This document shows, piece after piece, positions 3,580 through 52,674 of a stretch of 64,000 nt of DNA. Numbering within the stretch: the first letter of the stretch is position 1; each line of letters starts with the position of its first letter. Both the position numbers and the translations under genes were made by a program. The stretch covers positions 124,001-188,000 of IMG/VR virus record IMGVR_UViG_3300031997_000001; one strand, written 5' to 3'. Under the pieces are notes generated by a model, which was given only the letters and a program-made list of their open reading frames with translations, did no database searches and had not been told where the DNA came from.

Positions 3580-3813
3580 GTGCCCAGCGTATTCGTGTAC
3601 TGCCGCGGAGACATAAAAGAGTTCCAGTGGCCAGCGAGCAAGACAATTGGCGAAGCAGCTGTGGAGGCATCGAAAGCGTTTGATTATGCGCGTCCGCCGG
3701 ACATTCCACATTTTCAAGATCTCGAAGATCTCGTCCTCCAGCAATCCGATACCTTTACAAAGCTAGGGACCAGGGATGGGGATAGCTTCTTGCTCATAGC
3801 ACTTTTCTCATAG
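3580..3813 (+). CDS. Ubiquitin-like (beta-grasp) protein
   Basis: GTG after GAGGT; KTIGE...LVLQQSDTFTKLGTRDGDSFLLI resembles the Ubl TLxxxGIxDGxxLxL pattern; no terminal GG. Confidence 0.5.
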   Translation: MPSVFVYCRGDIKEFQWPASKTIGEAAVEASKAFDYARPPDIPHFQDLEDLVLQQSDTFTKLGTRDGDSFLLIALFS

Positions 3814-4870: not shown

Positions 4871-4944
4871 GCACCCATAGCACAATGGTAGTGCTGCGAA
4901 CTCTAAATTCGCGAATGAGGGTTCAATTCCCTCTGGGTGCACCA
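4871..4944 (+). tRNA. Amber suppressor tRNA (anticodon CUA)
   Basis: Cloverleaf GCACCCA/TGGGTGC, D GCAC/GTGC, anticodon arm GCGAA-CT CTA AA-TTCGC, T arm GAGGG-TTCAATT-CCCTC, encoded ACCA. Confidence 0.95.
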
Positions 4945-15304: not shown

Positions 15305-15308
15305 GGAT

Positions 15309-16103
15309 TTAGAATAATGTCAGGGCTGGAGGCGCAGTGTCGTACTTCTTCTTGAGCTCTACCCAAGTCGGCGACATAAGCCATTGTCTTGATTCGGAGA
15401 ATGGTAACTTGGTGTAAAACTTGTATTCCCCACAATATTTACAAAATTGTTGAAGTTGTGCTTTTGCTTTATCGCCTTGTATAAACTCTTTGAGATCCTT
15501 GATGCCAGCGTCTAATCCTAGAATTCTATCAACCGTTTGGAGGCCCACGCATATATAATAGCCGTATTTATTCAACACGACTGGGCATTCGGTTAGTATG
15601 GGGCATCCAGCCGAAAAATCTTTATTGGCGAGCTCAGGGACGTCCATGGGCGCAACGTACATCGTTTTTAGCGCAGGTACGCCAGCACTTTTGTTAGAAT
15701 TCACTATCAAATCAGTCTTGACCCTAAGGTGCGTCCCGTCCACGCCGCATGTACCCCAATTTCCAAGGTTCATGATGGCCTTCTGCATCGCCAGGTTGTT
15801 TACCCCGTTTGTTGCTATGAGGATTTGGTGCCCCAAAGCAGGCTGGTATTTTCTAAATAGGTTTAGGATCTCAAGAAACTGTGGGTGGAGAGTACACTCT
15901 CCGCCGCATAGCCATATCTTGTTCCATTTCCAACTATTGTCTTTTGTCTGCTGAAAAAGCTTCTCTATTTGTTCCAACGACATGTCGTCTGCGCCGCCAC
16001 GTGTGAATCTGCCGCAGCCGGCTATACAATTTCCACATGAGAGATTACATCGATACGTAAGCATTATCATTAGATCCCGCCAGTTTATGGGGTATGTATC
16101 CAT
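15309..16103 (-). CDS. Radical SAM protein (paralog of neighbour)
   Basis: CNLSCGNC; GGECTLHP; shared FCKYCGEYKFYT..SPTW.ELKKKYD. Confidence 0.9.
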   Translation of the reverse strand: MDTYPINWRDLMIMLTYRCNLSCGNCIAGCGRFTRGGADDMSLEQIEKLFQQTKDNSWKWNKIWLCGGECTLHPQFLEILNLFRKYQPALGHQILIATNGVNNLAMQKAIMNLGNWGTCGVDGTHLRVKTDLIVNSNKSAGVPALKTMYVAPMDVPELANKDFSAGCPILTECPVVLNKYGYYICVGLQTVDRILGLDAGIKDLKEFIQGDKAKAQLQQFCKYCGEYKFYTKLPFSESRQWLMSPTWVELKKKYDTAPPALTLF

Positions 16104-16105
16104 AT

Positions 16106-16240
16106 CTAATCGTCTCCTGTCAGATCAACAATAGTTAAGTAATCCGGTGTCCATAGGATTACTGATCCAGAGATTACTTCCATACTGTTCGGCTTTAGGG
16201 AAAGCAAAGCCATCAACCATAGAAATCCACGCCGGGTCAT
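16106..16240 (-). CDS. Small protein with twin-arginine-like N-terminus
   Basis: MTRRGFLWLMALL; ATGA coupling. Confidence 0.45.
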   Translation of the reverse strand: MTRRGFLWLMALLSLKPNSMEVISGSVILWTPDYLTIVDLTGDD

Positions 16241-16644
16241 AAAACAGGCCTTGCTTTTATGAGTTTGATGATCTTGGCAGGATTCCCCACAACGACAACA
16301 AATGGCGGCACATCCTTTGTGATCACTGAGCCAGCACCTACAACGGAATGCTTTCCGATACGGCAAGGTCCAACGATGATGCATCCACTAGCAATCCAAA
16401 CGCCTTCCTCGATGATGATGTTTCTGTTCTTCTTTATGGCTAATTGTCTAGCCGCCCCAAACTGTTCGTAATCATGCGCGCCAGTCAACAACATGGTGTT
16501 ATGAGCAATAGAAGCATAGGCATCAATTTGAACGTAGCCAGAAGAAACGTTTATGAGAACATCGGCTAAAGCTGCTGTTGGGTGTATTTTGACGTCCGCA
16601 GCAGAACCCCCCATAATCTTCCATATTCTAGGGATGCAAACCAT
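16237..16644 (-). CDS. Hexapeptide-repeat acyltransferase
   Basis: IEEGVWIASGCII...IGKHSVVGAGSVITKDVPP...GNPAK. Confidence 0.9.
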   Translation of the reverse strand: MVCIPRIWKIMGGSAADVKIHPTAALADVLINVSSGYVQIDAYASIAHNTMLLTGAHDYEQFGAARQLAIKKNRNIIIEEGVWIASGCIIVGPCRIGKHSVVGAGSVITKDVPPFVVVVGNPAKIIKLIKARPVL

Positions 16645-16652
16645 AGGTACCC

Positions 16653-22394: not shown

Positions 22395-23016
22395 GTCGCA
22401 ATTTCCTTTGCCCACTTGACGCAAGCGGGCTTGTCCCAGAAGGCAGCCTTCTGAGCTTTGAGGTCCATGCCTTCCAGCTTGAGAACTTCGCTGGTCCGGT
22501 CGCCGGGACGCATTTGGCAAAGCAGTCCTGTGCAGCTGTGCGCGTGATCTTGATGTATGCGAAACCTTCCAGGTCCAAATGGGCTGCAATGATCTGGAGC
22601 TGGTCCTCCAGCTTCATGCGGACCAGCTCAGGATCGATGTGTCCGTCCCGATCGGTTTTTGGCATGTTATGGTTCCAGTTTGCGGACGGTGCCCCCGAGC
22701 GGTTGCTTTGGTTTCGGTTCCCGGCTGCCAATTGCTTCCTTGGTAAGCATAAAAATGCCCCAGCCATCCAGAAGACCAAAGACAATAATAATGGCTATTC
22801 CTATGATCTCGACGACTGCAGGGCTCATGTTTGCTTGTTTATGTGCAGCGCGTTTTCTTCAAGGCCCTTAGAGACACTCCGGGCCGGGTGTCTGCTACTG
22901 GCCGGTGCGGCGGGACCGGCGGTACCTGTTCCGGCGATTCTGGCGATTTGTCGACTCTAACCCTGCAACGCCTACCGCACCGTGGGCATATCACGGTCAC
23001 TTCCATGGCCAATCCC

Positions 23017-28609: not shown

Positions 28610-30612
28610 TCACTTCACGGAGAGCCCCAGGACCTTCTCGACGGCCGTCTCGCGGACGAACTTGCTCCAGGAGAGCTTGGACTTCTGGCCGGGGCCAGGG
28701 CACTGATCATAGGCGGCCACGACGAATGCCACGCCATTCAATGGCCTGCTCTGGCAGGAATAAAGGCCCGGAAGCCCTTCGATCCGCCAGAAGGTGGAAA
28801 GCACCCCGTAGGTAGCCCCACTCATCTTGGCGTCCTGGTTCAGGAACAGATTCTTGCCGTTTGTGATGCGGGCAGCAAGCGGTAGCGACTTGGGGTCGAT
28901 CTTCTCTTTCATGACTTGACCTCCGGATCGTCGAAGCTCTTCCAGATTCCGGAGTACCCGCAAGTACAGCAACCTGCCGTACTCGTCGGCCCGTAGTCTA
29001 GCTCACTGAACCCGCGGTCTCCGGAGTCGGACATCTTGACGACTGTTTTGACGCAGATGTTGAACGGTCCATAACTCCCACATTTGGGACACTTCTTGGC
29101 CTTGAGACAATTCGCATTGGGATTGCTCAATGTTTCCCCCTGAAATGCATCATGACGCGATCCTCGACGAACCGGACGACCTTGTCCAGCTTGTTCACGT
29201 ACTGCCGAGCCACCTTGATCTGCTTCGCGACGGCCTTGTTCGGGTCCCTGTACGTGTAATCCTCCGTAAAGGCAGGGAGCCCTCCGCTGTCGCCGTGGGT
29301 ATCATTCATGAGACAGAAGTATTTGCCGTCGAAGTATTTGCCGGAGTCTGTGGGGTAGAGGTTCAACGAGCCCATACGAAGCGCGTAGCACCATCCGCCG
29401 TGATTATACCATACGCTGATTCTCCAGGGTCCGCCGCGCATTCGCTTCTGGAGAGCCCGCGCCTTGGCGAAAGCTTCTGCCTTGCCTGGCTTCATTCGGT
29501 CTCCTCGTCCTTGATGCCGTAATGCTCGTTGAAGGCTTTGCGCGCCTCGTTATTCAGGCTCTCAAGATCTTCGTCGCTCACGCCAGGGATGCCGGTAAGA
29601 TACGGCATGTCGTGCTCGCCCTCGCAGTGGATAACCGACCCGTCCTCGAGCACGATCTTGGAGAGTTGAAATGTGGGATCGCCAAATTCCGTGGTCAGGT
29701 GACCCACGACGTCCTTGACCTTCTTGCCGGTGAGCTTAACCAGGCTAATGCTGCTCCCCGGTTCATCGGATGCCTTGACGTCCTTGAAGTTCATTACTGA
29801 CCTCCTACTTCAGTTCGGGTCCGCCGATCGCCCGCCAGGCGGATTCGGGGGAACTCTGAAAGATCTCGTCGATGTCGTCCTGCTCCTGCTCTTCCCCCTC
29901 GTCCTCGGCCTCACCATCGACGTTCGCAGACGTCTCCCAGATCTTCTTGGCCTTCGACTTCGCCGGATTGGCCACATGACCCTCCAGGAGCCAGGCGTCG
30001 TACCCGTAGTCGCAACCGCCGATGTAGGTGCAGATGTACGCGGTCACCGGCTTGCCCTTGTGCGTGGCCCTGCAGATGGCCGTCCCGCCGTCGCCGGAAA
30101 GATCGCCCTCCCATTCGGGCTTGCTCATCGCTTGTCCTTTCTACCAAGCCGCCTTTGGATGAATTGCTGCACCTTCTTCTGGAAGCGCTTCTCGTCCCAG
30201 GGATGGTCCAGCTCCCACTTGAGCTTCTTAGCCGCCTCGATCTCTTCCAGGTTCTTCCGCCCCTTTGAGCCCTTCTTCAGGAGCGCTGACAAAGGCCCGA
30301 AGCCGAAAGCTGCTCGAATGGTCTTGATCGTCCGCTGACTTCTGGCGTGGCACTTGTGGCACATTAGCCCGCCACCACGGTCCGGTGCAGGCTTCCGCCT
30401 CTTGCAGATCAGGCACCGCTTGGGCATGTCTGGTTCCTTGATTACGGCTTCTCCAGCCCGTTCTCGGTTGCGGTCATTTGCTTCCCGTTGTCGATGCGCT
30501 CGACCGTGAACATCGCCTGTCCGTAGTACTTGTCCTTGAGGCGCTCGATGATCCGCACCTTGCGCATGGACTTGGTGAACCAGACGACGTCGCCGGGCTT
30601 GAATTTCTTCAT
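28610..30612 (-). other. Seven small coupled hypothetical genes (28610-28912, 28909-29130, 29127-29495, 29492-29794, 29805-30128, 30125-30427, 30442-30612)
   Basis: Tiled ORFs with SD/overlaps; two carry Zn-ribbon Cys pairs. Confidence 0.65.
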
Positions 30613-30613
30613 G

Positions 30614-31783
30614 TCAGTCCTTGTAGGGGTCCTCTTCGTCCTCGCCTGCCATCGCTACGCCGATCGGCGAGAGCTTGTGCAGGATGCGGATCGAAGCCTC
30701 ATGGTGAGCGAGGACCTCGGACAGCCGCTTGTAGCAGTGGGGCGACTCGTCGGTCCCGGCCCCGCGGAGCTCCACGTTCTCCCTCTTCACCCACTCCGTC
30801 ATCATCTCCTTGGAGATCTTCCCGCCCACGCGGGGCTGTCCCCACTTCTTGCGCTTGCCCGCAGCCTCGTTGCGACCCATGACGCGGCCCGCGCCGTGGA
30901 CGGTGGAGTAGAGGGCGACCTTGCTCTCGTCGGAGTCTACGCCTTCCACGATGACGGAGCCGTCCCCCATGCTGCCACCGATGAAGCTCCTCTGGCCAGG
31001 GAACGCAGGCGTCGCGCCCTTGCGCACTACCCAAAGCGGTGCGCCGTCGTGCGTCTCCAGCCAGCTGAAGTTATGGTGGTTGTGGACCTCATCGATGATG
31101 TTGGCACCAAGGAGCGCAGCCACCTTGCCGCAGACCCAATCCCGGCCGGCGTAAGCGTAGCGGCCGGCGAGGCTCATGCAGACAAGATAGTCCTTGCCAA
31201 GCGCGGACTCGGCATCGAAGGTGACAGGCTCGACGTTGACGCCGTCCTTGCCGCCGCCTGCCTTGATGAAGTAGGTGGCGATCTTGTGGCCCAGGCCCCG
31301 TGAGCCGAAGTGGACGCCGATCCAGACGCGCCCCGCCTCGTCCTCGAAGAGGTCCACGAAGTGATTCCCCGAGCCGATCGTGCCGAGCTGTTCGCGGGCC
31401 AGGACCTTTAGGGTACTGACGGCTCCGACGTCCCAGGCTGGACTGTTAAAGAGCGGATGCTCGACCTCTTCCTTGTTCTTCCGGCCGATGCCGAAGGAAA
31501 GGCTGTGCCAGATGTCGTCCATAATCTTGGCGATGTTCTTCCGCACTTCCGCCACGGGGGCGTCGGTAAGAACAGCCTTGTTCCCGCAGGCGATGTCGTA
31601 CCCGACCCCGGACGGGCTGATGCGCCCGTGGTAGGCGACGACGCCGCCGATAGGCACGGCGTAGCCGAGATGATGGTCGGCCATAAGAGCCACGCGGGCA
31701 GCCGTGCGCTTGCACGTCCGCATCTGCTCCACCGCGTTGTCCTGCGGGACGCCCCAGACCGGAATGCCGTCGATCATCTGCAT
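30614..31783 (-). CDS. rtcB: RtcB family RNA ligase
   Basis: MADHHLGYAVPIGGV; GYDIACGN; GTIGSGNHF; HFGSRG; HNHHNF; HGAGR; DESPHCYK. Confidence 0.95.
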   Translation of the reverse strand: MQMIDGIPVWGVPQDNAVEQMRTCKRTAARVALMADHHLGYAVPIGGVVAYHGRISPSGVGYDIACGNKAVLTDAPVAEVRKNIAKIMDDIWHSLSFGIGRKNKEEVEHPLFNSPAWDVGAVSTLKVLAREQLGTIGSGNHFVDLFEDEAGRVWIGVHFGSRGLGHKIATYFIKAGGGKDGVNVEPVTFDAESALGKDYLVCMSLAGRYAYAGRDWVCGKVAALLGANIIDEVHNHHNFSWLETHDGAPLWVVRKGATPAFPGQRSFIGGSMGDGSVIVEGVDSDESKVALYSTVHGAGRVMGRNEAAGKRKKWGQPRVGGKISKEMMTEWVKRENVELRGAGTDESPHCYKRLSEVLAHHEASIRILHKLSPIGVAMAGEDEEDPYKD

Positions 31784-31793
31784 CTGGCTTCTC

Positions 31794-32129
31794 CTAGAGC
31801 TCTCTGCTCAGCGCATCCTTGAGGTGGAATTCGGTCTCCAGCAGGGCGCGCTCATTGAAGCCTGTATATGCCGAGACACGCTGGACCTCGATCGGAGCCT
31901 TGGCGACCTCAGACAGAAGAAGGAGTCCGTCCGGGCTCATCTCCAGCACCTTGCAGAGGAGGATCGTCATCTTGGCGAACGGGGGATTGCATTTCCCGTT
32001 CTCGATGCCAGACAGGTATCCCTTGCACGTTCCAGATCGCTCAGCAAGTCGCTCGAGCGTCATGCCCCTATGCTTCCTGATCTCATGGAGCACCTGGCCG
32101 AACCGCTTTCTGGCGCTGTTTTTCATCAC
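31794..32129 (-). CDS. XRE-family HTH regulator
   Basis: RGMTLERLAERSGTCKGYLSGIENGK. Confidence 0.85.
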   Translation of the reverse strand: MMKNSARKRFGQVLHEIRKHRGMTLERLAERSGTCKGYLSGIENGKCNPPFAKMTILLCKVLEMSPDGLLLLSEVAKAPIEVQRVSAYTGFNERALLETEFHLKDALSREL

Positions 32130-32151
32130 ATTGCCTCCTTGCTCATGTCGT

Positions 32152-32187
32152 ATTGTACCAGAAAGGGGGAATTAGGAGGGAAGAATT
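32152..32187 (-). promoter_or_regulatory. Extended -10 promoter for XRE-rtcB unit
   Basis: AATTCTTCCC-16-CTGGTACAAT. Confidence 0.6.
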
Positions 32188-32194
32188 AAAGAGT

Positions 32195-32659
32195 CCTCGG
32201 CGACGGACGACGGCTCGCTTGAACGGTTCCTTGTAGCCTAGCCGCTTTTGGCTTGTCCACGGTGCAGGCGGTGTGATCATTCCCAGCGGCGTGCGGGTCG
32301 AGTAAAGCTCCGCCATGCGCGGATCTCGACACGCCCCTGCTAGGCCCAATCACATACCAGGATTTGCACCCGGCTGAACTCTCACTCTCTTTGAGGAGAG
32401 ACCATCTACTGTTTTCACCTGCTTGTGTCCGATCCCATTACTCTGGCTGGGACTTGCCGCCCAGCGTGGTACGGGGGAAGTGTCCAGAGCTGGAGGCCAC
32501 CGGGCGTCCTCCTAAGGGCAGACCCGCGCTGGATAACTCGTCATGCGATCCGCTGTTGATCAGACAACGAAACGCATCTGGTATGGACCGAGTTTCTCCA
32601 CCACGCAACGGCAACGATGGGCCGTGCCAAGAGGAACCAATGCGCGTCCGCCACCGAGG
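32195..32659 (-). ncRNA. Large structured non-coding RNA (~465 nt), family unknown
   Basis: 15-bp closing stem pairs fully (with G-U) only on - strand; about 10 nested helices; T-loop-like hairpin; no credible ORF. Confidence 0.75.
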
Positions 32660-32673
32660 CTATGTCCTCCTGA

Positions 32674-33272
32674 TTATGTCTCCTCGAAACAGAAGTAATA
32701 GCGGGGCCTGTGCTGGAAGCTCACGAGTCCACTCTTCCCGTCGGCCTTGCGGACGACGCGAGCGAACGGGGCCAGGAATCCGAGCACGTTGAAGTCGCGG
32801 GTCAGCTCCTCCGTGTTCCACACCTGTCCGTACTGCGCTTCCAGCGTCTCCCTCTCGGTGGGATGGGAATTGATCTCGCCGACCAGATGACGGCGCAGAG
32901 CTTCCGTCTCGTCCACTTTCTCGGTCATGAAGCCTCCTACTTGGCTACGGAGTCGTATGGGACCCAGACCCAGGCCAGCACATAAGCGCCCTCACTGCTG
33001 CGAGAGACCCGGGCGGTCGGCAGGGGCGCGGATGCCTCATCGACCTCCAGTGCGCCCTCATCCTCGTGAAGCCGCTTGGCGGCTTTGACGATCGCTTCGT
33101 CCGTGATGTTCTTGCTATTCTCGGTCATTTAGCCCTCCTTATTCGTCGTGGGAGGCTTGCCCGCAGTCAGCCGCAGGACCAGGAGTTGGAAGCAGAGGTC
33201 CATGATCTTCAGGCAGATGATCGTGCCAGAAGCGATCAAGGCGATGTAGATGATCGTCGTGTTGACGTCCAT
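32674..33272 (-). other. Three small hypothetical genes (32674-32928, 32937-33128, 33129-33272 TM peptide)
   Basis: Tiled ORFs with SD. Confidence 0.6.
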
Positions 33273-33300
33273 CTTATTCCCCTAAGAATTAGCCACCCTC

Positions 33301-34431
33301 TTACCTGTCTTTCGGTTCCAACCATGAGATACCCAGCGCGTCCAGAATCTGCTTTTCGCTGTCCCTGGCAATTATGTTGCCCGCGACATCCGTGAGGCCG
33401 TAGCGCGTGAGATGAAGCCCCATCGTCTTGGCCTTGACCCGGCACTTGATGTTGAACTCGGCGCTTCCCGTAAAGAAGAGCAGCCCCGCTCCGTAGGCCA
33501 CCTTCGGGACGATCCGCAGGTCGACCTGGATGCCCTCCTTCACGATCGACGTAGCCTTCTCCCCGAGGTCCAGGTTCTTACCGAGCGTCCGACAGAACCG
33601 GGAATAAGCCACCTCGCCGTCGTCCCCGGCGATCAGGATGTCGATGTCCTTCGGATCCCTGCCGCGTCGAAGCGACCCGGCCACATCGATCCGTGCGTCG
33701 GGGAACTGCTTGCGCAGGGCCTCCACGATGGCGGTCGCCACGGACATTGCCTCGGCGTGCGGGAACCTCTTCTTGAGCTGGGTCTTCCCGCGCAGCTCCT
33801 CGAGCAGCGTCGTGGTCCCGGTCGCCCGCAGCTCGCCGATCGCCTTGGCGATCCCTTCCCCGATGCCGGAGACCTGAAGCAGCATGTTGCCGTCGTACTG
33901 CTCGAAACTGTCGAGCTCCTCGATCGCCTTGGCCGCGTTCTTGTAGGCCACGGCCTTGTACTGGTTCTCCCCTGCGATCTTCAGCCGCTCCGCCGTCTCC
34001 ACCAGCGCGGCTATGATCCCGGACCGCGGGAGCACGCTCTCGACGGTCGCCCCGGACGGAGGAACGTAAGGCTGGATGACCCAGCGGCTGCCGGATGCGA
34101 TGCTGGCCCGCTTGAGCGTCCACTGACCAGCAACCTTCCCCGAATCGACGCGGAAGCGGACCAGATCCGGCGTCCGCTCCTCGATCTCTAGCTCGCCCTT
34201 CTCCCAGATCTCTACGGTCCCCGCCCCGTAGCCCGCTGCGATCTCTCCCTCGAATCCCATCCAGGAGACGGGATGGTCTTCGGTCTGGATGGCCAGGCGG
34301 GATTTCTTGCTCTTGGCAGAGAAGCCCTTGGGGATCGCCCAAGACGGAGCCACCTCGCCCTCGACGAAGCGGAAGTCGTAATGCAGCCCGGCCTTCTTGG
34401 CCAGGTGCTTCTGAATCACAAATGGGGTCAT
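33301..34431 (-). CDS. LigD-type 3'-phosphoesterase fused to family X DNA polymerase
   Basis: FVIQKH..LHYDFRF..SWAIPKG..TEDHP..GYGAGTVEIWEKG, then HhH VSGIGEGIA, AGSLRR..DIDIL, QVDLR, FTGS..FN. Confidence 0.9.
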   Translation of the reverse strand: MTPFVIQKHLAKKAGLHYDFRFVEGEVAPSWAIPKGFSAKSKKSRLAIQTEDHPVSWMGFEGEIAAGYGAGTVEIWEKGELEIEERTPDLVRFRVDSGKVAGQWTLKRASIASGSRWVIQPYVPPSGATVESVLPRSGIIAALVETAERLKIAGENQYKAVAYKNAAKAIEELDSFEQYDGNMLLQVSGIGEGIAKAIGELRATGTTTLLEELRGKTQLKKRFPHAEAMSVATAIVEALRKQFPDARIDVAGSLRRGRDPKDIDILIAGDDGEVAYSRFCRTLGKNLDLGEKATSIVKEGIQVDLRIVPKVAYGAGLLFFTGSAEFNIKCRVKAKTMGLHLTRYGLTDVAGNIIARDSEKQILDALGISWLEPKDR

Positions 34432-37400
34432 GCCTCCTCCCCGTCGACCCTGATCTTGAGCGAGACCGGAGCGTCTTCAGATGCCAGGAAGGCCTGATAG
34501 TTCTGAAGCGTGGCCGTCGGCTCGAGCTCCTCCCGCAGCGAATCCCGGATCTCCTCGTACTTCTGCTTCTTGGCGATGGCATCCTGAATCCGGGGCAGGA
34601 ACGTCTCCTCGTAGAACTTCTGTCCCAGCCGCCTGATGATCTCCCGGTCGTACATCGCGTCCGTTTGCGGGATGCCGGAGAGCTCCTTCCATGCGAAGAG
34701 GCCCGGGATCATCTCACCCTTTGGCGCGGCCTTCTTGCACGCGCAGTGCTTGGCCGCCTCGACGGCAGGGGAGGGCTTGTTCTCCAGGGCTCCCCCTCCC
34801 ACCTTCAAACGCCTACCGCCGGCGACGTGCTTGGCCAGCCAGAGGGCGTCGCCCTTGGCGCGCGAGACGGGCATCCCCTTGCTGACGTTCTTGACGAAGT
34901 TGTACACCGCGAAGACGTCAAATCGGCGAAGCATGGGAACCTCCTAGATTTCGGCGTCCCGCTCGTCCTTCTTGGTGAAGAGCTTCCGCTTCTTGCGGGG
35001 AAGCTCCGCAGCGGGAAGGTTTTCCTCCTGCGGGAAATCCTTGGTATTGATCGCACCGGACGCATCCAGGGGATGCAAGCTCGAAGTGGCCTCGTGGGAG
35101 CACGAAGCCTCCGGCTTCTTGTCCAGATCGCCGGGCGTCTTGGCTCCGGGCCGGTCGACCAGCTTCTTGTGCTGGGCGTTCCACAGCATGCTGCCTGCAG
35201 CAGGGTGGGCCTTCATGGTCTTGATCTGCTCTTCCGCCCACTCGGTGGCGGAGACCGCACAGTTGTCTCTGTCCAGCAACGGGTAGAAGGTCCCGGCGTA
35301 AAGGTTGCCTTCCCAGTAGAGGGCCCATTTCTGTCCCTCGTACTGGACCAGCAGGCTGCCATCCTTGGAATGGCAGGCCGTCAGCTGAGGTTGCGTCCAG
35401 CTGGGCCAGTTGGCGTGCTCGACCGCGGGCCACGCAGTGATTTCAGGCATATGACCTCCTTGGGTGCTTTGTCGGCCTCACGCCAAAATCCGCACCGCTT
35501 GCAGGCATAGTATCCATCGGCGTTGATCTTGAGCTTCCGGCCGCAGTTGAAACAGCTTGCCTGCTTCTGCTCGGTCATAGGCTCATCTTCTTGACCCAGG
35601 CCTCAGCAGCCCGCCGGTTGGGGAACGACGCGTGCAATTCCCCGTCGGCCATGACGACAGCGGGCATCTCCGAACGGCCGCTGACTCGGATGGTGAACTT
35701 CGGGTGCCGGTACTTCGGGTGCGAGTACAGGACCTTGTGCGTCTTGGTATCGATGATCCTGACGATGCACTCGTCCATGATGGCTTGACCGCCTGTCGAC
35801 TTGGAATTGTGGATCATCAGCGGAACCTTGACCGGCCCCATGCTCCGTCCGACGGTCCCTTCGACATCATGCTCCTCCAGCCAGTCAAGCCCGGCCTTCT
35901 TGGTGTGGCCGTACCGGACACGGATGCGACGAGCGTGCGGCCAGACTCTGCAGTTTTCAAGGATCCTCACGACTTCGGGCGGCGTCCGGGGATCGTAGCT
36001 GGTTTCGATGGGTTTCATTTCAGGTTCCTGACTTTCCTCTTGGAAATGGCCATCTGGGCCACTAGCCTGCGACGTGCCTTGATATACCACCGATCAAGCG
36101 CCTTGAGCTTTTTCGCGTAGGTTGCCTGGAGCTCGCACTCAGCCCTGTTGAAGTGGCGCTCGATCGACCGCAACATCTCGGCCTTCGTGTTGTCCTTGGT
36201 CTTATCGAGCCTGTGCAGTTCCCAGCCGACCTTGTGGCACGGACACATGCAAGCCCACTCTTCGTGAGACGCCCAGAGCTTGAAGATCTGGTGTCCGCAC
36301 TCTAGGCATCTCTTTTGCCAGGCCTTCTTCATTTGGCCTCCTGAACCGCGACGCAGGCGACATAGACGACGTCGCGGTCCCGTTTCTTGAGACTGGTGAT
36401 GACCTCTTTGCAGGCCTGCGGGAACGCGCCGTCGCGATCTGCCTCCACGACCACCGCGCCCTTCTCGAGGACCGAGTCGTCGTCCTCGAGGCGGACCTCG
36501 TAGAGCACCTTGAACTTGCCCATGGTCTTCCTCCCCAGCTTGCACATGCGCTTGTACCAGTGCCACTCTTTCTCCAGCTGGATCAGTACGACGCCTAGCA
36601 CGACGCCCAGAAGGATGTCGAGTAAGTGTTCCATGGTGTCGGTGTCTCCTAGAAGTAATCGTCGAGTGTTGGAACGACCGAGAATCCCTTCTTCCGCAGC
36701 GTTGAGCAGACCCTCCCATACATGACGCAGGTCGCCTCGTCGTCGGTGTTGAGGCCTCCCCGCGAGTCCTGTCCGTCCTTGACTTCGACGTTCTCGACAT
36801 CCGTGTCGGCCGGGTCCTTGACCGGATCACGATCGGCAGTCCGGAACCCGCAGACCCACAGATGGTTGTCCCGCTTGGCCCCCTTCGCGGTCAATATCAG
36901 GTTCTCCGTGTCGACGTCCCCTCCCGGTTCCGAGACTTCGACCTTGGCGGCTAGAGGCTTTAGCAATTCGACGACGTCTTTCGTCTTCCAGTGCGTCACG
37001 TTCGCTCTCCTAGAAGTCCTCGATGCTGAGAATCCTGCTGCCCATGCTGCCAATGGCGTTGGGCGACTTGGCCAGCTTGTCTTCCGCGATCTTCCTGATG
37101 ATGGTCTGGCGCATCTCAGAGGAGAGCTTCACCAGTTTCACGGCAGCGGCGATTCCCACGTCGACGACGGTGAATTCCTCCACCCATGCGTCGCGAAGCG
37201 TCTCCCACTTCTTGTAGGCTTCCTTGTACTTGGCGCGACGCACCACCTTCGTGCCCTGGCTGACTCCCTGGAGGCTGATTATGTCCAGCGCAAAGTCCAT
37301 CTCCCTGGGTCGGTCGCCAGCGAAGGTGCACGCCAGTTGGACGACAGCGCTTTGCGCGGAAATCCTGCTGTCGTAGGGCCGCGCCTGCTCTATGTCGACG

Positions 37401-44535: not shown

Positions 44536-45300
44536 CTAGATGTCCAGAACCCTGGACCCGAGGTTGCCGAACTTCTGCAGGACCTGCTTGGACGCGCCGG
44601 TCTCGGCTTCCAGCGAACCCCAGTCGAAGTTGCTGGACGTCGTCGACGGACCGTCGTCGTCTCCCAGCCTGCGCCCACCCAGGTCGCCGAACTTCTTGAG
44701 GGCGGCGATGACGGAAGCGGCGATCCGCTTGAGCACCATCCGCACGCCGGCGACCAGCTTGTTCTCCACGTCCCATCGGCGGTCGAAGGCCATCGTTCCG
44801 CCGGCCTTGCTCTCGGCGATGGACTTGAGCTGCCAGGCCTGGTCCTTGTTGATGACCAGGTGGGTGACGTCCTTGGACCAGGAGTTCATGACCTCGGCGT
44901 AGACGAACTTGTTGGCGTCGTAGTTCTGCAGGATCTTGAGGGTGCCCGCGTCCACCTGGGGACCGAAGGGCTTCTTCTTCGACAGCTGCAGGTCGACGAA
45001 CTCGAAGCGGGCGATCTTGTACTGGTGGCCCAGCGTCTTAGCCACCTCTTCCTCCTGACGGAGCTCGCCGATCTGGGTCTCGACGTACTGACCCTCCTTA
45101 CGCGGCCGGAGCTTGTCCTTGAGCTTCTTGGCCAGGAACTCATCCAGCTCGGACTCCGTGGCGAAGTCCAGGACCTGTTCCGCGGACGATCCGCCGACGC
45201 GTCCCCATGAGAGGGTCAGCTTGAGCCCGTCCCTCTCGGTTTTGTAAAACTTGTTGTGTTGTGCGCTTTTGCACAGGTAGTACTTCACTTCTTTCGCCAT
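44536..45300 (-). CDS. WGR-domain protein
   Basis: HNKFY...LSWGRVG..Q; C-terminal FGxLGxR repeats. Confidence 0.8.
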   Translation of the reverse strand: MAKEVKYYLCKSAQHNKFYKTERDGLKLTLSWGRVGGSSAEQVLDFATESELDEFLAKKLKDKLRPRKEGQYVETQIGELRQEEEVAKTLGHQYKIARFEFVDLQLSKKKPFGPQVDAGTLKILQNYDANKFVYAEVMNSWSKDVTHLVINKDQAWQLKSIAESKAGGTMAFDRRWDVENKLVAGVRMVLKRIAASVIAALKKFGDLGGRRLGDDDGPSTTSSNFDWGSLEAETGASKQVLQKFGNLGSRVLDI

Positions 45301-45375
45301 GGGTTGCACTCCAGAGGAGGCTGAAGAAGTAGACAGTCATAGCTGCGGTCAGGGCCAGAGCGAACTCGGGAGCCA

Positions 45376-46568
45376 TCAGTGGATGGCGACCTCGACTGCG
45401 CGATTGCCGATGAGCTGCTTGTCGACTAGCATGGCGAAGACCTTCCCGGCTGCCTTCCCTTCCGTCTTGCCGTAGTGACGCTGCATCCCCTCGACCCCGA
45501 CCGTGGGATGGATGTGCAACCAGGCTACCCATTTGCCCGGCTTGTCCATGGACTCCTGCACCCGGATGAGGATTCTGTCTTTCTCTTTCTTCATCCCTCG
45601 TTCTCCTTGTTGAACTTCTCGATCGCCTTGGCCAGCTGCTCGGCGGCGGGGCCGAAGACGTACTCGTGGGACGCGTTCTCCTCGTCGACGAAATAGCCAG
45701 CGATGTAGGGTGCGATGGACAGGAGACCGAAGCTCATCGGAGCGATCCAGATTTCCCCATGGGCGTCGTAGCCCTTGGGCTTGCGGAACTTCTCGCCCTC
45801 GCCGGAGTAGAGCGTGCTGCCGTCCAGCTGCTTCCAGCCGTGCTTGATCAGCCATTCGCTGAGCGTCTCGCCCATATCAAGCCTCCTAGGTAAGGAACTT
45901 CTTGAGATCCGGCCGGAGCGTCTTAGCCTCCCTGATCTGGTTCCAGATGAACAGCCTCCGGAGCGGGACCGTGAATCCTCCCTTGCGGATCCTGTAGCGC
46001 TTGTCCAGCCAGGCCTTGAGCGTGGGATACTTCCCCTTTTCCCCGCGCCATGAGACGCCGCAGATCCCGTCGTCCGTGATGATCCCGTTGAACTTGAACG
46101 CCAGGTCGTTGATGAAGCAACCCTCGACCCAGGAGTCCAGATCTCCCATAGAGCCGTGCCGGATCTCGATCTTGTGCGAGCTCCCGAGCCAGATGGGGTG
46201 GGCGTGATCCTTCCACATGATGATCCCGCACCCGCCAGGACCCCAGCCGTCCCATCCCTTCTCGACCTTGACCTGGCCGCCGAATCGAGCCTTGCTGATC
46301 TCCGTCAGGGCGTCAAACAACTTGTCGCCTGTCAGCTTGTGGTGGGTCGTGATGTAGCCGTGGTTGGCCATCAAGCCTCCTAGTTGCAGACCGTGAAGTC
46401 CTTGACCTTCTTGTTCTTGCGCAGGGCCTCGCGGACGGCATCGATCACAAGGGGTCGAAGCTCGTCCTTCGGGAGGCCCTCGACGTCGATGATGAAGTCG
46501 TCCTTCGGGCCTTCGCCCAGCGAAATAGAGACGGAATTCATGAAGCCGCGATGGGGTTTCTTGCTCAT
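45376..46568 (-). other. Four small hypothetical genes (45376-45594, 45591-45875, 45886-46374, 46380-46568)
   Basis: Tiled ORFs with SD. Confidence 0.6.
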
Positions 46569-47413
46569 TTCAGCCACTCCTTGAACTGGTCGTAGGTGAC
46601 CACGTCCAGCCCGAGTTCCATGGCAGCCATTGCCTTGTTACTGCCGGTGCCGAGCGCCTTGACGATCAGGTGCGTGCAGTTCTTGGACACGCTGCTCCTG
46701 ACGACGCCGCCCAGGGACTCGAACTTCTCCTGCTCGGCTCCCGTGGGCCGGACCCCCGTAAAGACGATGGCCCGACCGGCCAGCTTGCCGCCCGTTGCCA
46801 CGGGCTTCGCCTTCTCGGCCTTCGCAATCTTGACGACCTTGAGCAGCTTCTTGATGAGCGGCAGGTTGGCCTCCACGCCGGCGGCCACGCCCTCCCGGAT
46901 GGCAGGTCCGAGAGTTTGGCACTTGCGGATGAATGCCGGATCCGAGAACTTCTCGGTCGTGTCCAGCCCGTTGTCCTCCACCATGTGCTTCGCGGCCCGG
47001 GTGCCCAGAAAGCGAACACCCAAAGATCCAAAAAATTCGTGAAGCTGGAGTTCCTGGGTCTTTCCGATCTCGTCCAGGATCTGCTTGGCGCGATCCTCGC
47101 CGAGTCGACCATTGCCCACTTTGAGATCTGCCAACTGCTTTTGGGTGAGCGCGTAAAGATCAGCGGGATCGCGGACCAATTCGCTATCCCACAGGGCGAG
47201 CTCAACCTCATCTCCCAAGAATTTGATATTCAGCGATTTTCTCCAGCGACGGACCTTCCTGATCAGACGCCCTTCGCATTCCTCATTCTGACAGAAGAGG
47301 GCTGGCCCGACACGCACAAGCTTGGACTTGCAAGCGGGGCATGAAGTAGGGATGGCGATGGGCTTGTCAAGCCGCTCGAGCTCGACCATCTTACCCTTGC
47401 ATTTGATTTGCAT
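46565..47413 (-). CDS. ligA: NAD-dependent DNA ligase C-terminal half (Zn finger, HhH, BRCT)
   Basis: PTSCPAC..FCQNEEC; LNIKFLG; DPADLY; LGVRFLG; IVFTG..GGVVRSSVSKNCTHLI; own GGAG SD. Confidence 0.85.
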   Translation of the reverse strand: MQIKCKGKMVELERLDKPIAIPTSCPACKSKLVRVGPALFCQNEECEGRLIRKVRRWRKSLNIKFLGDEVELALWDSELVRDPADLYALTQKQLADLKVGNGRLGEDRAKQILDEIGKTQELQLHEFFGSLGVRFLGTRAAKHMVEDNGLDTTEKFSDPAFIRKCQTLGPAIREGVAAGVEANLPLIKKLLKVVKIAKAEKAKPVATGGKLAGRAIVFTGVRPTGAEQEKFESLGGVVRSSVSKNCTHLIVKALGTGSNKAMAAMELGLDVVTYDQFKEWLK

Positions 47414-47451
47414 GAGGAATTGCTCCAGTATGTTAAAGGCAAACATAAAAC

Positions 47452-48312
47452 ATGAACATAATAACAGAATACAAGCAGGGATTGTCCAGTCTTATGCTTG
47501 CGCGCAAATATGGCATTCCAAAGTGCGCAGTTCTGCGGATTCTTGCAAAAGCTGGCGTTGAACGGCGCTCGCTTTCTGTCGCACTTAGAAAGTATGCCAT
47601 AGATGAGACTTTCTTCGATCGGATCGACAACGAACGGAAAGCGTATTGGCTCGGGTTCTTATTAGCTGATGGACACATACGCCATTCGGGTCGTTTCAAC
47701 AGGAGCGGGTCTGTAAGGGTGGCACTACAAGGGCGAGATGTGGCGCACCTTGAAATGCTCAAATCACACATAGGCAGCCAAAAGCCGATCAAGCTCACCA
47801 CCACAAATGCGGGGCACCCGTGTTGCATGCTTGATCTTCACTCTACGAGACTCGCGAACGTCCTGCTGTCTGCTGGCTGGACTGAGTTTAAAGAGAAAGG
47901 CGACTGCCGCATTTTAAGCACAGTACCGTTACGGTTGCGGCGACATCTCGTACGCGGCCTTGTAGACGGCGATGGTCACTTTCGGAGTTCTCCGGCTTAC
48001 AGGTGGAGAAACGGCAGGGTGTCGTACCAGCTCCATTTTGAGTTTGTCGACCTCCACCTTCCTATCGTTCAATGGGTCCAGCAGTACCTCGTGCGGCATT
48101 GTGCCATGCACCGCACAAAGGTATATCATCCATCAAAAGCTTACACGATCCGTTACGGTGGTAAGCAGGTCACGCGTATTTTGCGCCACCTCTACGCTAG
48201 CGCACACGTCGCACTTGAGCGGAAGGTAATTAAAGCACATGCTTTGCTTTCTGCTGCGTCTCCGTCCCCACAAATCCGCAGCCGGAGCACCGATAAGTCG
48301 GCTCCGCTTTGA
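47452..48312 (+). mobile_element. LAGLIDADG homing endonuclease gene, antisense inside ligA
   Basis: N-terminal HTH; KAYWLGFLLADGH and HLVRGLVDGDG motifs; LERK; atypical codon use. Confidence 0.85.
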
Positions 48313-49381
48313 TGCACTTCGGCACAACATCCCCAGCCCTGATGATGGCCACAGTCGATCCGAGCCTGGCCCCGAGGCGTTCGATCTCCTCCACGTTGTT
48401 GAGGAGTACGTTCGAGATGATCACGCCTCCGATTCCGACGGGCTTGACCTTTCCGGTCGGAATTATGGCCCCTGTATGTCCAATGGTGAAGATCACGTCC
48501 TCGAGAACGGTCTCCGCCCCGAGCGCCTCCCACTTGTACGCCCGCTGTCCCTTCGGCCGGTCGTCCGAGACGCCCATCGCCTCGGAAGCCGCGCAGTCGT
48601 TGAGCTTGACGACGATCCCGTCGACCTCGAAGGGCAGCTTCTCCCGCGCCTGGCCCATCGCCTCGTGCGCCTTCTCGACGTTCTCCAGCTTGGTCAGCTT
48701 CTGCATCAGGTGGACCTGGAACCCGCAGCTCTCCAGGAACTGGAGCTTCTGGAGCTCGGTGCCCACGATCAGCAGGTCAGACTCCGTGCCGACGACGTCG
48801 TACGGCAGGACGCGCAGATGCTCGCATCCGGCCCCGTCCTTGGACCGCATGACCCCGTTGCCCTGGTTGCGCGGGTTGGAGCCATCCGGCCAGTACTTCT
48901 TGAAGTCCTCCTTGTACAGCAGACACTCCCCGCGGATGAACCCGGTGAACGGGGTAGGGAGCTGCTTGATGATATGCGTGGACCTGAGGATGTTGACCGT
49001 CACGTCCTCCCCGACCTTCCCGTCGCCTCGGGAGACCGCCCGGACCAGCTTCCCCTTCTTGTACTCCAGGGAGAGCGAGCAGCCATCATACTTCCACTGG
49101 ACCACGACTTCCTTGACGGGGAGCTTGTCCCACCACTTCCCCAGCTCCTCGAGCGTCTTGACCTTCTCCTGGGAGCCCATCGCTATGGCGTGCTTGACCG
49201 GCTTGAAGAGGGAGCCAGCCGGCGGGGCGCCGACCGTCTTGAGGAAGTCGTTCTTGGGGTCCAGCTCCCGAAGCTGGTCGACCAGCGCGTCGAACTCGGC
49301 GTCCGTCAAGAGAGAGACGCCGGTGTTGTAATAGGCCTCGGAGGCGGCCTTCAGCTGGGCGACGATCGCGGTGATGCTCAT
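48230..49381 (-). CDS. ligA: NAD-dependent DNA ligase N-terminal half (adenylation + OB)
   Basis: YYN..DAEFD; KYDG; RGDGKVGEDVT; RGE; NPRN; DGIVVK; AYKW; RAGDVVP. Confidence 0.9.
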   Translation of the reverse strand: MSITAIVAQLKAASEAYYNTGVSLLTDAEFDALVDQLRELDPKNDFLKTVGAPPAGSLFKPVKHAIAMGSQEKVKTLEELGKWWDKLPVKEVVVQWKYDGCSLSLEYKKGKLVRAVSRGDGKVGEDVTVNILRSTHIIKQLPTPFTGFIRGECLLYKEDFKKYWPDGSNPRNQGNGVMRSKDGAGCEHLRVLPYDVVGTESDLLIVGTELQKLQFLESCGFQVHLMQKLTKLENVEKAHEAMGQAREKLPFEVDGIVVKLNDCAASEAMGVSDDRPKGQRAYKWEALGAETVLEDVIFTIGHTGAIIPTGKVKPVGIGGVIISNVLLNNVEEIERLGARLGSTVAIIRAGDVVPKCIKAEPTYRCSGCGFVGTETQQKAKHVL

Positions 49382-49569
49382 GCCAGTGTCTCCAATTCCC
49401 GACGCAGTTCCGTCTCCCCCATGTACTGAATGTTGGAGAGGTAGGAGTACAGCTCATCGTCGCTCAGCCCATCCCTGTTCGGCTTATAGTGCTCGGTCAG
49501 GAGCTTCCGGACCTCGGTGATGTCCAGTTCCTTCTGGGCCAGAAGCTGCTTCGCCTGATCGCTGGTCAT
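49378..49569 (-). CDS. Hypothetical protein
   Basis: SD GGAGG, coupled. Confidence 0.6.
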   Translation of the reverse strand: MTSDQAKQLLAQKELDITEVRKLLTEHYKPNRDGLSDDELYSYLSNIQYMGETELRRELETLA

Positions 49570-51729: not shown

Positions 51730-51773
51730 TTGGGATAGTCAAATATAGAACATAAGCAACATGGGGTAATGCT

Positions 51774-52439
51774 ATGAAGAAATGCGCCTGGTGCAAGACG
51801 CCAAAGCCGAATTCGAAATTTCCCCTGCATTATCCAGTTTGTTTTAAGTGCTTGGCCTATCGTGCGCGCAAAAGCAAGCCATGCAAGATTTGCGGAGTAA
51901 CCAAACCAAAGAAAAAATTCCCCCCAGCCAGTCTTAGGTGTTATGCTTGTGCTTGGGTTTGTAAGCGTAAAGACCCCAAATACCGGGAAAAATGCAACGC
52001 GTACAACAGGCGCCGGTACAAGGAAGACGCAGCTTACAGACAACACTATCTCGCCAAATGCCGGGTACGCAACAAAGAACGCTGGCGGCTGGGCTTGATA
52101 CAAGCCTACGACGAAAGCTCCCCACGCAGGTGGCTTTTTGCAAAGACGCGCAGAGGGAGAACACACGGGCGACGCAGTAACTTCAAGTGGGGCGTTAGTC
52201 TGGATTTCCTGTGTGGTCTTTGGGAAGACCAAAAAGGCAAATGTGCTCTTTCTGGTCTTCCCATGACAATGCAACGATACAGGCTTGATGGCGCATCCAT
52301 AGACCGGATCGACTCCACCAAAGGCTACGTGCCTGGGAACATCCAGCTTGTGTGCAAGGCCATCAACCTCGCGAAGAATAAGAACACGAACGAGGAGATG
52401 ATGGCATTCATTAAGGCGCTCCGGGCTATTCCTAGATAA
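51774..52439 (+). mobile_element. Free-standing HNH-type endonuclease with N-terminal Zn fingers
   Basis: QKGKCALSG...SIDRIDSTKGYVPGNIQLVC..IN..KN; antisense; lower GC. Confidence 0.75.
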
Positions 52440-52455
52440 CTCCTTTGGTACGCAG

Positions 52456-52674
52456 TCACTGCTTGACCTGCTGGCTGGCCTGTGTCATTTCTCTGATCCA
52501 GTCGACTGTCAGGTCTCCATGCTGCGCCCGCTGGGTCGGCTCGTCGCAGCCCTGCTCGACGGCAAGGCCGAGGGCGCGAATGACCTCGAATGGGACGAAG
52601 GCGCAGACGCCGCCGACCTTGTCGAAGCCGTTGACTCGGACGAACTTTCCCCCGTTCAGGTTGTTGACCATCAT
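52456..52674 (-). CDS. Hypothetical protein
   Basis: Coupled ORF MMVNNLNGG. Confidence 0.5.
   Translation of the reverse strand: MMVNNLNGGKFVRVNGFDKVGGVCAFVPFEVIRALGLAVEQGCDEPTQRAQHGDLTVDWIREMTQASQQVKQ

Follow-up and report, generated by a model that had tools for sequence, protein, structure and literature searches.

The stretch of DNA analysed here, referred to as the window, comprises 64,000 nucleotides (positions 124,001 to 188,000) of IMGVR_UViG_3300031997_000001, a 235-kb jumbo phage from sediment. Its minus strand carries a leftward row of genes in which a LigD 3'-phosphoesterase/PolX (LigD-PE/PolX) fusion is followed by two small ORFs, a gap, an XRE-family gene and rtcB. A sequence-only reading had proposed that the gap, two genes upstream of rtcB, holds a large structured non-coding RNA, and sequence and coordinates (32195-32659) were as it had described them. 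The features of the locus and of the predicted RNA are, in the direction of the gene row:

33301-34431, minus strand: fusion of a LigD 3'-phosphoesterase with a PolX-type nucleotidyltransferase, whose polymerase part consists of HHH_8, palm and thumb
32937-33128, minus strand: small ORF, one of the two between the LigD-PE/PolX gene and the gap
32674-32928, minus strand: 84-aa gene upstream of the RNA, with homologues at 51-94% identity; its stop forms the left edge of the cassette described below
32195-32659, minus strand: core of the structured non-coding RNA (465 nt), defined by fold z-score and conserved edge, without Rfam match and without conserved ORF
32645-32659, minus strand: 5' strand of the closing helix P1, CCUCGGUGGCGGACG, pairing with 32195-32209
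32526-32604, minus strand: long three-segment hairpin arm (RNA positions 56-134)
32416-32422, minus strand: GCAGGUG, 5' strand of the helix closing the 3' domain; partner CGCCUGC at 32264-32270
32356-32374, minus strand: T-arm-like hairpin GCCGGG-UGCAAAU-CCUGGU, pair probability 0.94
32276-32350, minus strand: variable arm, 75 nt here and replaced in relatives
32240-32253, minus strand: small hairpin AGCC-AAAAGC-GGCU, pair probability 0.82
32195-32209, minus strand: 3' strand of P1, CGUCCGUCGCCGAGG, which reads CGUCCGCUGCCGGGG in four variants
32145-32194, minus strand: pyrimidine-rich tail after P1, conserved in all variants up to a -10-like box, beyond which the sequences diverge
31794-32126, minus strand: XRE-family helix-turn-helix gene, 110 aa from the ATG at 32126, with matches to HTH_31, HTH_19 and HTH_3
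30614-31783, minus strand: rtcB (RNA 3'-phosphate ligase), the downstream neighbour; Pfam RtcB, E = 1.6e-63

The pairing of domains in the LigD-PE/PolX protein is unusual. Further genes for nucleic-acid end repair cluster around rtcB on the same strand and encode an NAD-dependent DNA ligase as well as WGR-domain and BRCT-domain proteins (48233-49453, 44539-45336 and 46568-47491). The LigD-PE/PolX gene is missing from some contigs that bear the RNA, namely L030 according to its gene table and L038 according to an alignment gap, and is therefore not strictly linked to it. Elsewhere in the window, at 4871-4944 on the plus strand, lies an amber suppressor tRNA with anticodon CUA, labelled tRNA-Pyl by ARAGORN, whose CCA end is encoded. 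Recoding of TAG is not evident in the window, as adjacent same-frame ORF pairs split by one stop are separated by TAG in four cases, TAA in three and TGA in one.

The minus strand of 32195-32659 folds far above chance and the plus strand does not. The minimum free energy (MFE) of the minus strand is -212.3 kcal/mol (z = -5.43) and includes 17 G-U pairs; none of 100 dinucleotide shuffles was as good. The plus strand reached -186.0 (z = -1.80). When 11 other non-coding gaps of the window were folded on both strands as controls, their z-scores ranged from +1.9 to -2.3, against -4.9 for the candidate in the same run. The GC content of the candidate gap (0.61) equals the coding level, whereas the other gaps lie at 0.44-0.56 save one at 0.63, and the element is single-copy in the window. 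Its description as the largest ORF-free gap applies locally; larger coding-free gaps occur in the window, for example at 15305-16652, which sits in a low-GC region (0.44-0.47), and at 51739-52518. Neither these two nor two further long stretches without coding-like ORFs (22420-23016 and 47447-47928) folded above chance on either strand.

The region is non-coding. Every minus-strand frame contains TGA or TAA stops, and reading through TAG, considered in view of the tRNA(CUA), opens none of them as these stops remain. Among natural variants, moreover, the arm differs in length by 44 and 65 nt and one nucleotide is inserted at RNA position 30; these changes break all reading frames. Neither of the two longest open stretches of the minus strand has a real relative among the 5.8 and 1.8 billion proteins of two libraries, and no public assembly examined carries a gene call inside the RNA itself. 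The possibility left by the sequence-only reading, that an ORF follows the GGAGG just upstream, can be set aside: the variants L026, L027 and L038 lack the AGGAGG at 32665-32670 or have it misplaced, and there is no conserved ORF.

The predicted RNA is enclosed by P1, which had been described as 15 bp with two G-U pairs and is recovered in that form; in none of the six variants does its pair probability fall below 0.94. Its 3' strand shows three substitutions, all of which keep the pairing (G-U/G-C or U-A/U-G). The long arm is built from the segments GUGGUGGA/UCCAGCGC, AACUCGGUC/GACGAGUU and AUGCG.UUCGUUGU/ACAGCGGA.CGCAU, with mean pair probabilities of 0.83-0.91 over the six variants, and its sole substitution, U88C, hits an unpaired base. 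The helix GCAGGUG/CGCCUGC has a mean pair probability of 0.95 (minimum 0.80). The T-loop-like hairpin was located where the sequence-only reading had placed it, and a G-to-A change in L025, L035 and L041 converts one of its G-U pairs to A-U; in the small AGCC/GGCU hairpin a G-to-U change in L027 falls in the loop. Together with the base of the variable arm, these helices are robust in all variants. The middle third (RNA positions 136-235) shows competing folds among the variants. The pairing UUGCCGU/GCGGCAA with GCGUGGU/ACCACGC, proposed earlier as part of the structure, is the MFE fold in L026 and otherwise an alternative of similar energy, weakened by a G-to-A change in L038. Other pairings of that proposal did not hold up: GGCCCA/UGGGCC and GCCUAGC/GCUAGGC rest on the 75-nt arm that relatives lack and are not conserved, and UCCAG/CUGGA would leave a loop of 2 nt. 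In addition, UUAGGAGG inside the RNA (32508-32515) is perfectly complementary over 8 bp to CCUCCUAA in the conserved tail (32172-32180, minus strand); we estimate that about 0.3 such matches are expected by chance, and an extra C in L038 would bulge it. The tail motif CCUCCUAA also resembles the anti-Shine-Dalgarno end of 16S rRNA.

Relatives were reached via the neighbouring proteins and a 20-mer scan, which yielded six distinct full-length and two partial versions of the element. All belong to related phages and stem from sediment metagenomes of JGI or from ENA assemblies. The core measures 465 nt here and 464, 421-422 or 400 nt in the variants. The first base of P1 (32659) is exactly where conservation sets in, despite unrelated upstream flanks in L026, L027 and L038, and the element is a genuine, highly structured and strand-specific one with the very boundaries that the sequence-only reading gave. 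The flanks consist of an extra 114-aa ORF in L026 and L027 and of a different spacer in L038. Such an extra ORF of 109-114 aa between the 84-aa gene and the RNA (L026 2173-2517, L027 2-331) suggests that the left cassette junction may itself be a recombination hot spot. Within the element, the 75-nt arm is swapped for a 31-nt insert in five versions (L026, L027, L035, L041 and L028) and for a 9-nt insert in L038 and a DNA contig of run X23. The replacements are predicted to re-form a hairpin on a conserved GUG/CAC base, either GUGGCAG...CUGCCAC or GUGGCA-GAG-UGCCAC. As judged from these variants and their predicted folds, the element is bounded exactly by the 15-bp terminal helix; its core is fixed, and a single arm varies freely in length.

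Substitutions within predicted pairs, all one-sided, keep the pairing in eight cases and break it in one. The pair-keeping changes are G-U to G-C, G-C to G-U, U-A to U-G and G-U to A-U, most of them neutral only for a minus-strand RNA, and the remaining substitutions lie in loops, bulges or a short hypervariable junction. As roughly half of such changes would be expected to preserve pairing by chance according to our estimate, eight of nine lends modest support. No pair with both partners changed was found among the roughly six near-identical variants (mean column identity 90%), so covariation has no statistical power in this alignment. The variation thus agrees with the fold without amounting to statistically strong covariation.

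No homologue was found outside the phage lineage, either by BLAST of phage and plasmid collections or by pattern scans of viral, metagenome and genome sequences. Two pattern-scan hits were dismissed as chance, L032 being AT-rich and intergenic and L042 lying within an apparent ORF. A similar RNA was found neither at the rtcB loci of other phages nor downstream of distant homologues of the 84-aa gene (51-78% identical), and the gaps upstream of rtcB in L007 and L003 do not fold above chance. A search of the window for antisense targets, the suppressor tRNA included, revealed none above chance.

That the RNA belongs to no known class, as the sequence-only reading had presumed, is borne out by a comparison with the 4227 models of Rfam 15, for which the whole window was searched at the gathering threshold and the element alone, under permissive filters, at E<=10. 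No family matched the element even at E<=10. At the gathering threshold the whole window yields only the tRNA (4871-4941, 70.4 bits), and at E<=10 the region 32000-32900 yields only a chance match to snoR35 outside the element. ARAGORN likewise calls only the tRNA(CUA) at 4871-4944 in the window, and a tRNA or tmRNA was rejected as an identity of the element. RNase P RNA is similar in size, has a terminal P1 helix and contains T-loop-like motifs, and AAGUCC and GGUGAAA in the element are what we take to be short resemblances to RNase P motifs. This candidate was nevertheless rejected: no Rfam match appears at E<=10, and in a local alignment to E. coli rnpB the element reaches a score of 17, below the mean of 20.1 for shuffled controls. 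Manual inspection of the 15 nt between the 3' strands of P2 and P1 revealed no upstream complement as a candidate P4-type partner. Group I and group II introns were rejected as well, since no model matches, the element is intergenic and, at the empty site of the relative L016, a stop abuts the next start. Self-cleaving ribozymes (hammerhead, twister, HDV-like or similar) have no Rfam match in 32000-32900 at E<=10, and no bulge-helix-bulge motif flanks the element.

In kind, the element is most like GOLLD (RF01998) and ROOL (RF03087), large ornate non-coding RNAs of phages and prophages that have been studied by cryo-EM (PMC12286853). Like these, it is several hundred nucleotides long, rich in helices, phage-borne and non-coding, and occurs in environmental metagenomes. 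It matches neither covariance model at E<=10, however, and it is smaller (400-465 nt), does not adjoin tRNA genes and occurs in one phage lineage only. In its position beside rtcB it is most like the bacterial Y RNA YrlA, which is encoded in rsr-yrlBA-rtcBA operons (PMC4201824). In both, the ends pair, a T-arm-like hairpin is present and rtcB is encoded just downstream, but our element is three to four times larger, its T-loop carries G in place of U55, and ARAGORN and Rfam are negative. Neither a D-arm nor an acceptor mimic was found in it, and no Ro60/TROVE domain was detected among the roughly 30 window ORFs scanned with Pfam, which included all of at least 390 aa (the genome measures 235 kb). 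The element is a member of neither group. Two further systems offer partial likenesses. A 15-17 bp helix that joins the ends of an RNA within a polycistronic unit recalls the precursor stems cut by RNase III in rRNA and phage T7, although processing of the element would be our inference. T-box leaders are likewise large, cis-encoded structured RNAs upstream of a gene for tRNA or RNA metabolism, with a possible T-loop module in common; the element differs in having no Rfam match and no specifier/antiterminator architecture, and a promoter-like box separates it from the gene.

The T-arm-like hairpin was compared with viral tRNA genes. Among 70 viral contigs bearing the 17-nt motif CCRGG-UGCAAAU-CCYGG, this motif forms the T-arm of 13 tRNA genes called by ARAGORN, and the hairpin of the element (CCGGG-UGCAAAU-CCUGG) is the same motif as these real phage T-arms. 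This identity makes a tRNA-type T-loop module in the element plausible. T-loops are also generic modules of RNA tertiary structure. The phage tRNA genes with a UGCAAAU T-loop are found in L068, L071, L080, L085, L089, L098, L101-L105, L113 and L114; their T-loops have G where nearly all tRNAs carry U55 (pseudouridine), and those of L085 and L089 were called with a 4-base anticodon. A separate observation concerns L007, an unrelated GC-rich phage, in which a canonical T-arm, GAGGGUUCGAUCCCCUC, lies in the gap just upstream of rtcB (about 3583-3700, plus strand). It is contained in a fold of roughly 120 nt closed by CCGUCG/CGACGG and is called by neither ARAGORN nor Rfam. This gap may hold a tRNA-like or Y-RNA-like element beside rtcB; no TROVE domain was detected in the four upstream ORFs scanned. 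The RtcB matches of L008 and L013 agree with that of L007 in identity and coordinates.

The tail that follows P1 is conserved together with the RNA. It contains CCCUCCUAA (32172-32180) and an extended -10-like sequence, TGGTACAAT (32152-32160), which reads TGGTCTAAT or TGGTTTAAT in variants. We infer from this sequence a putative promoter of XRE-rtcB; a promoter consensus scan did not call the box. Neither a conserved promoter upstream of the RNA nor a terminator downstream of it was found. In the close relative L016, identity amounts to 97% for RtcB and 88% for the 84-aa protein but only 57% for XRE, and the element is absent; the stop of the 84-aa gene is followed by the XRE start two bases later. 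Among clusters of XRE proteins, those 99%, 90% and 77% identical have the RNA upstream in all three loci read, the fourth (49%) being outside this comparison. The absence of the RNA beside a divergent XRE and its presence in all three clusters indicate that RNA, tail and XRE allele are inherited as a unit. From this comparison, the RNA, the CU-rich tail of about 50 nt and a particular XRE allele appear as one cassette inserted between the 84-aa gene and rtcB. A linkage to rtcB in relatives, suggested earlier as a check, holds for position only, as rtcB occurs without the RNA in the 97%-identical relative. A more distant relative, represented by an 8-kb DNA contig of run X19, has the start of rtcB (31575-31795, about 86% identical) joined to about 33167 and seems to lack, or to have replaced, XRE, the RNA and both small ORFs (window 31795-33167).

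Indications of expression come from public sequencing runs. The sequence is present in many sediment DNA runs and in one RNA library, X24, an ice metatranscriptome, which contains about eight of the sampled words, all of them within the element. Its contigs cover 32225-32401 and 32413-32582 at 92-94% identity, which suggests that a divergent homologue is present as RNA, with the reservation that the contigs are undirected and DNA carry-over is possible. Within the examined range of 30600-34500, X24 also covers a nearby 63-aa gene with one contig and the LigD-PE/PolX gene with two fragments of 37-38 nt only, while no contig lies on XRE or rtcB.

Taken together, the locus contains a real, large structured RNA element that is apparently undescribed and is confined to one phage lineage. 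The case for its structure is good, that for its expression weak. We tentatively favour, at somewhat less than even confidence, the reading that it is a new, lineage-restricted large structured non-coding RNA of sediment jumbo phages which would be discrete and act in trans. The RNA would be transcribed with the leftward operon, as no conserved promoter precedes it. By analogy with the closing stems of rRNA precursors, the long terminal helix might allow its excision or stabilisation as a discrete RNA, and the extended -10-like box in the tail could then drive XRE-rtcB. Once matured, the RNA may serve as a folded scaffold or decoy, which is the weakest step of this proposal. The T-arm-like hairpin would be a candidate site of contact with a factor that recognises tRNA, as would suit the end-repair enzymes encoded nearby (RtcB, LigD-PE/PolX).

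The main alternative, possible but in our view doubtful, is a cis-acting leader or insulator of XRE-rtcB, in which the structured domain and the tail belong to the same mRNA. Such a leader would act on the stability of the mRNA, on the translation of XRE or on read-through out of the operon before it. The element lies on the same strand immediately upstream of XRE and is always inherited with its own XRE allele, and the tail conserved with it includes CCCUCCUAA, complementary to the AAGGAGG of XRE, so that its CCUCC could mask the XRE Shine-Dalgarno sequence in read-through transcripts. The absence of a conserved promoter upstream and of a terminator downstream would also suit a leader, and it might sense an RNA or protein signal, as the T-box leader senses tRNA. 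However, 400-465 nt with at least 12 helices is far above the size of known bacterial leaders, P1 (15-17 bp) appears too stable for a switch, and no T-box or riboswitch model matches. The -10-like box between RNA and XRE moreover implies that the XRE mRNA may exclude the RNA, and the contigs of the RNA library lie on the RNA and not on XRE or rtcB. The polymorphic presence of the element between close relatives, its sharp ends with an imperfect 15-bp terminal inverted repeat (P1, a MITE-like trait) and its variable internal arm could instead point to a selfish or relic mobile element, intron-like or MITE-like and functionless for the phage; a young selfish or neutral insertion would also be compatible with the lack of homologues outside the lineage. 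We regard this as unlikely, since the element is single in the window, occupies the same locus in every contig and has junctions without visible target-site duplication, and the swap also replaces the XRE allele, as expected for a recombination cassette rather than a simple insertion. Furthermore, it sits between genes without a group I, group II or ribozyme match, and its substitutions favour the minus-strand RNA fold.

That fold also bears on an element acting at the DNA level, such as an origin, a recombination or packaging site or a protein-binding array, or on a functionless chance structure. Inverted repeats exist on both strands, the plus strand is mildly structured (z -1.8) and the distribution is narrow, as such an explanation would have it, but the strong asymmetry between the strands (the minus-strand MFE includes 17 G-U pairs), substitutions that are wobble-compatible on the minus strand only, arm replacements that keep a hairpin, a GC content equal to that of coding DNA and unlike other gaps, and 11 control gaps without comparable folding make it improbable. 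Least probable of all is the idea, raised in the sequence-only reading, that the RNA is a substrate of RtcB: a cut at the base of P1 would leave a 2',3'-cyclic phosphate and a 5'-OH, which RtcB would join into a circle. P1 does bring the 5' and 3' ends together, and rtcB is encoded two genes downstream. Yet no self-cleaving ribozyme or bulge-helix-bulge motif flanks the element, its 5' flank is not conserved, the few RNA contigs contain no back-joint that would mark a circle, and L016 has an unchanged rtcB despite lacking the RNA. For so long a closing stem, cleavage by an enzyme of the RNase III type would seem more natural. Such cleavage leaves a 5'-phosphate and a 3'-OH, ends that RtcB does not join. 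Circularisation, and the nuclease decoy offered alongside it, found no support. A bolder version of the trans-acting reading, to which we give little credence, would make the element the first representative of a new class of large RNAs with which phages assist the adjacent repair enzymes. It might, for instance, mimic the tRNA elbow or T-arm and so recruit or titrate the phage RtcB or a host nuclease that recognises tRNA, or it might itself be cut and re-ligated (circularised) during infection in an exchange of defence and counter-defence.

Large, intricately folded RNAs of bacteria and phages are rare, and those known from the past proved to be ribozymes, guide RNAs or, unexpectedly, assemblies made of RNA only. 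The candidate described here matches no described family, and close relatives with and without it, together with three versions of its arm, constitute a natural experiment in which structure and function are directly testable. If it were a young insertion in one phage lineage, its interest would be modest. Its position next to rtcB recalls the arrangement of Y RNA and rtcB in enterobacteria, and a functional link to rtcB, if true, would bear on how phages handle RNA damage.
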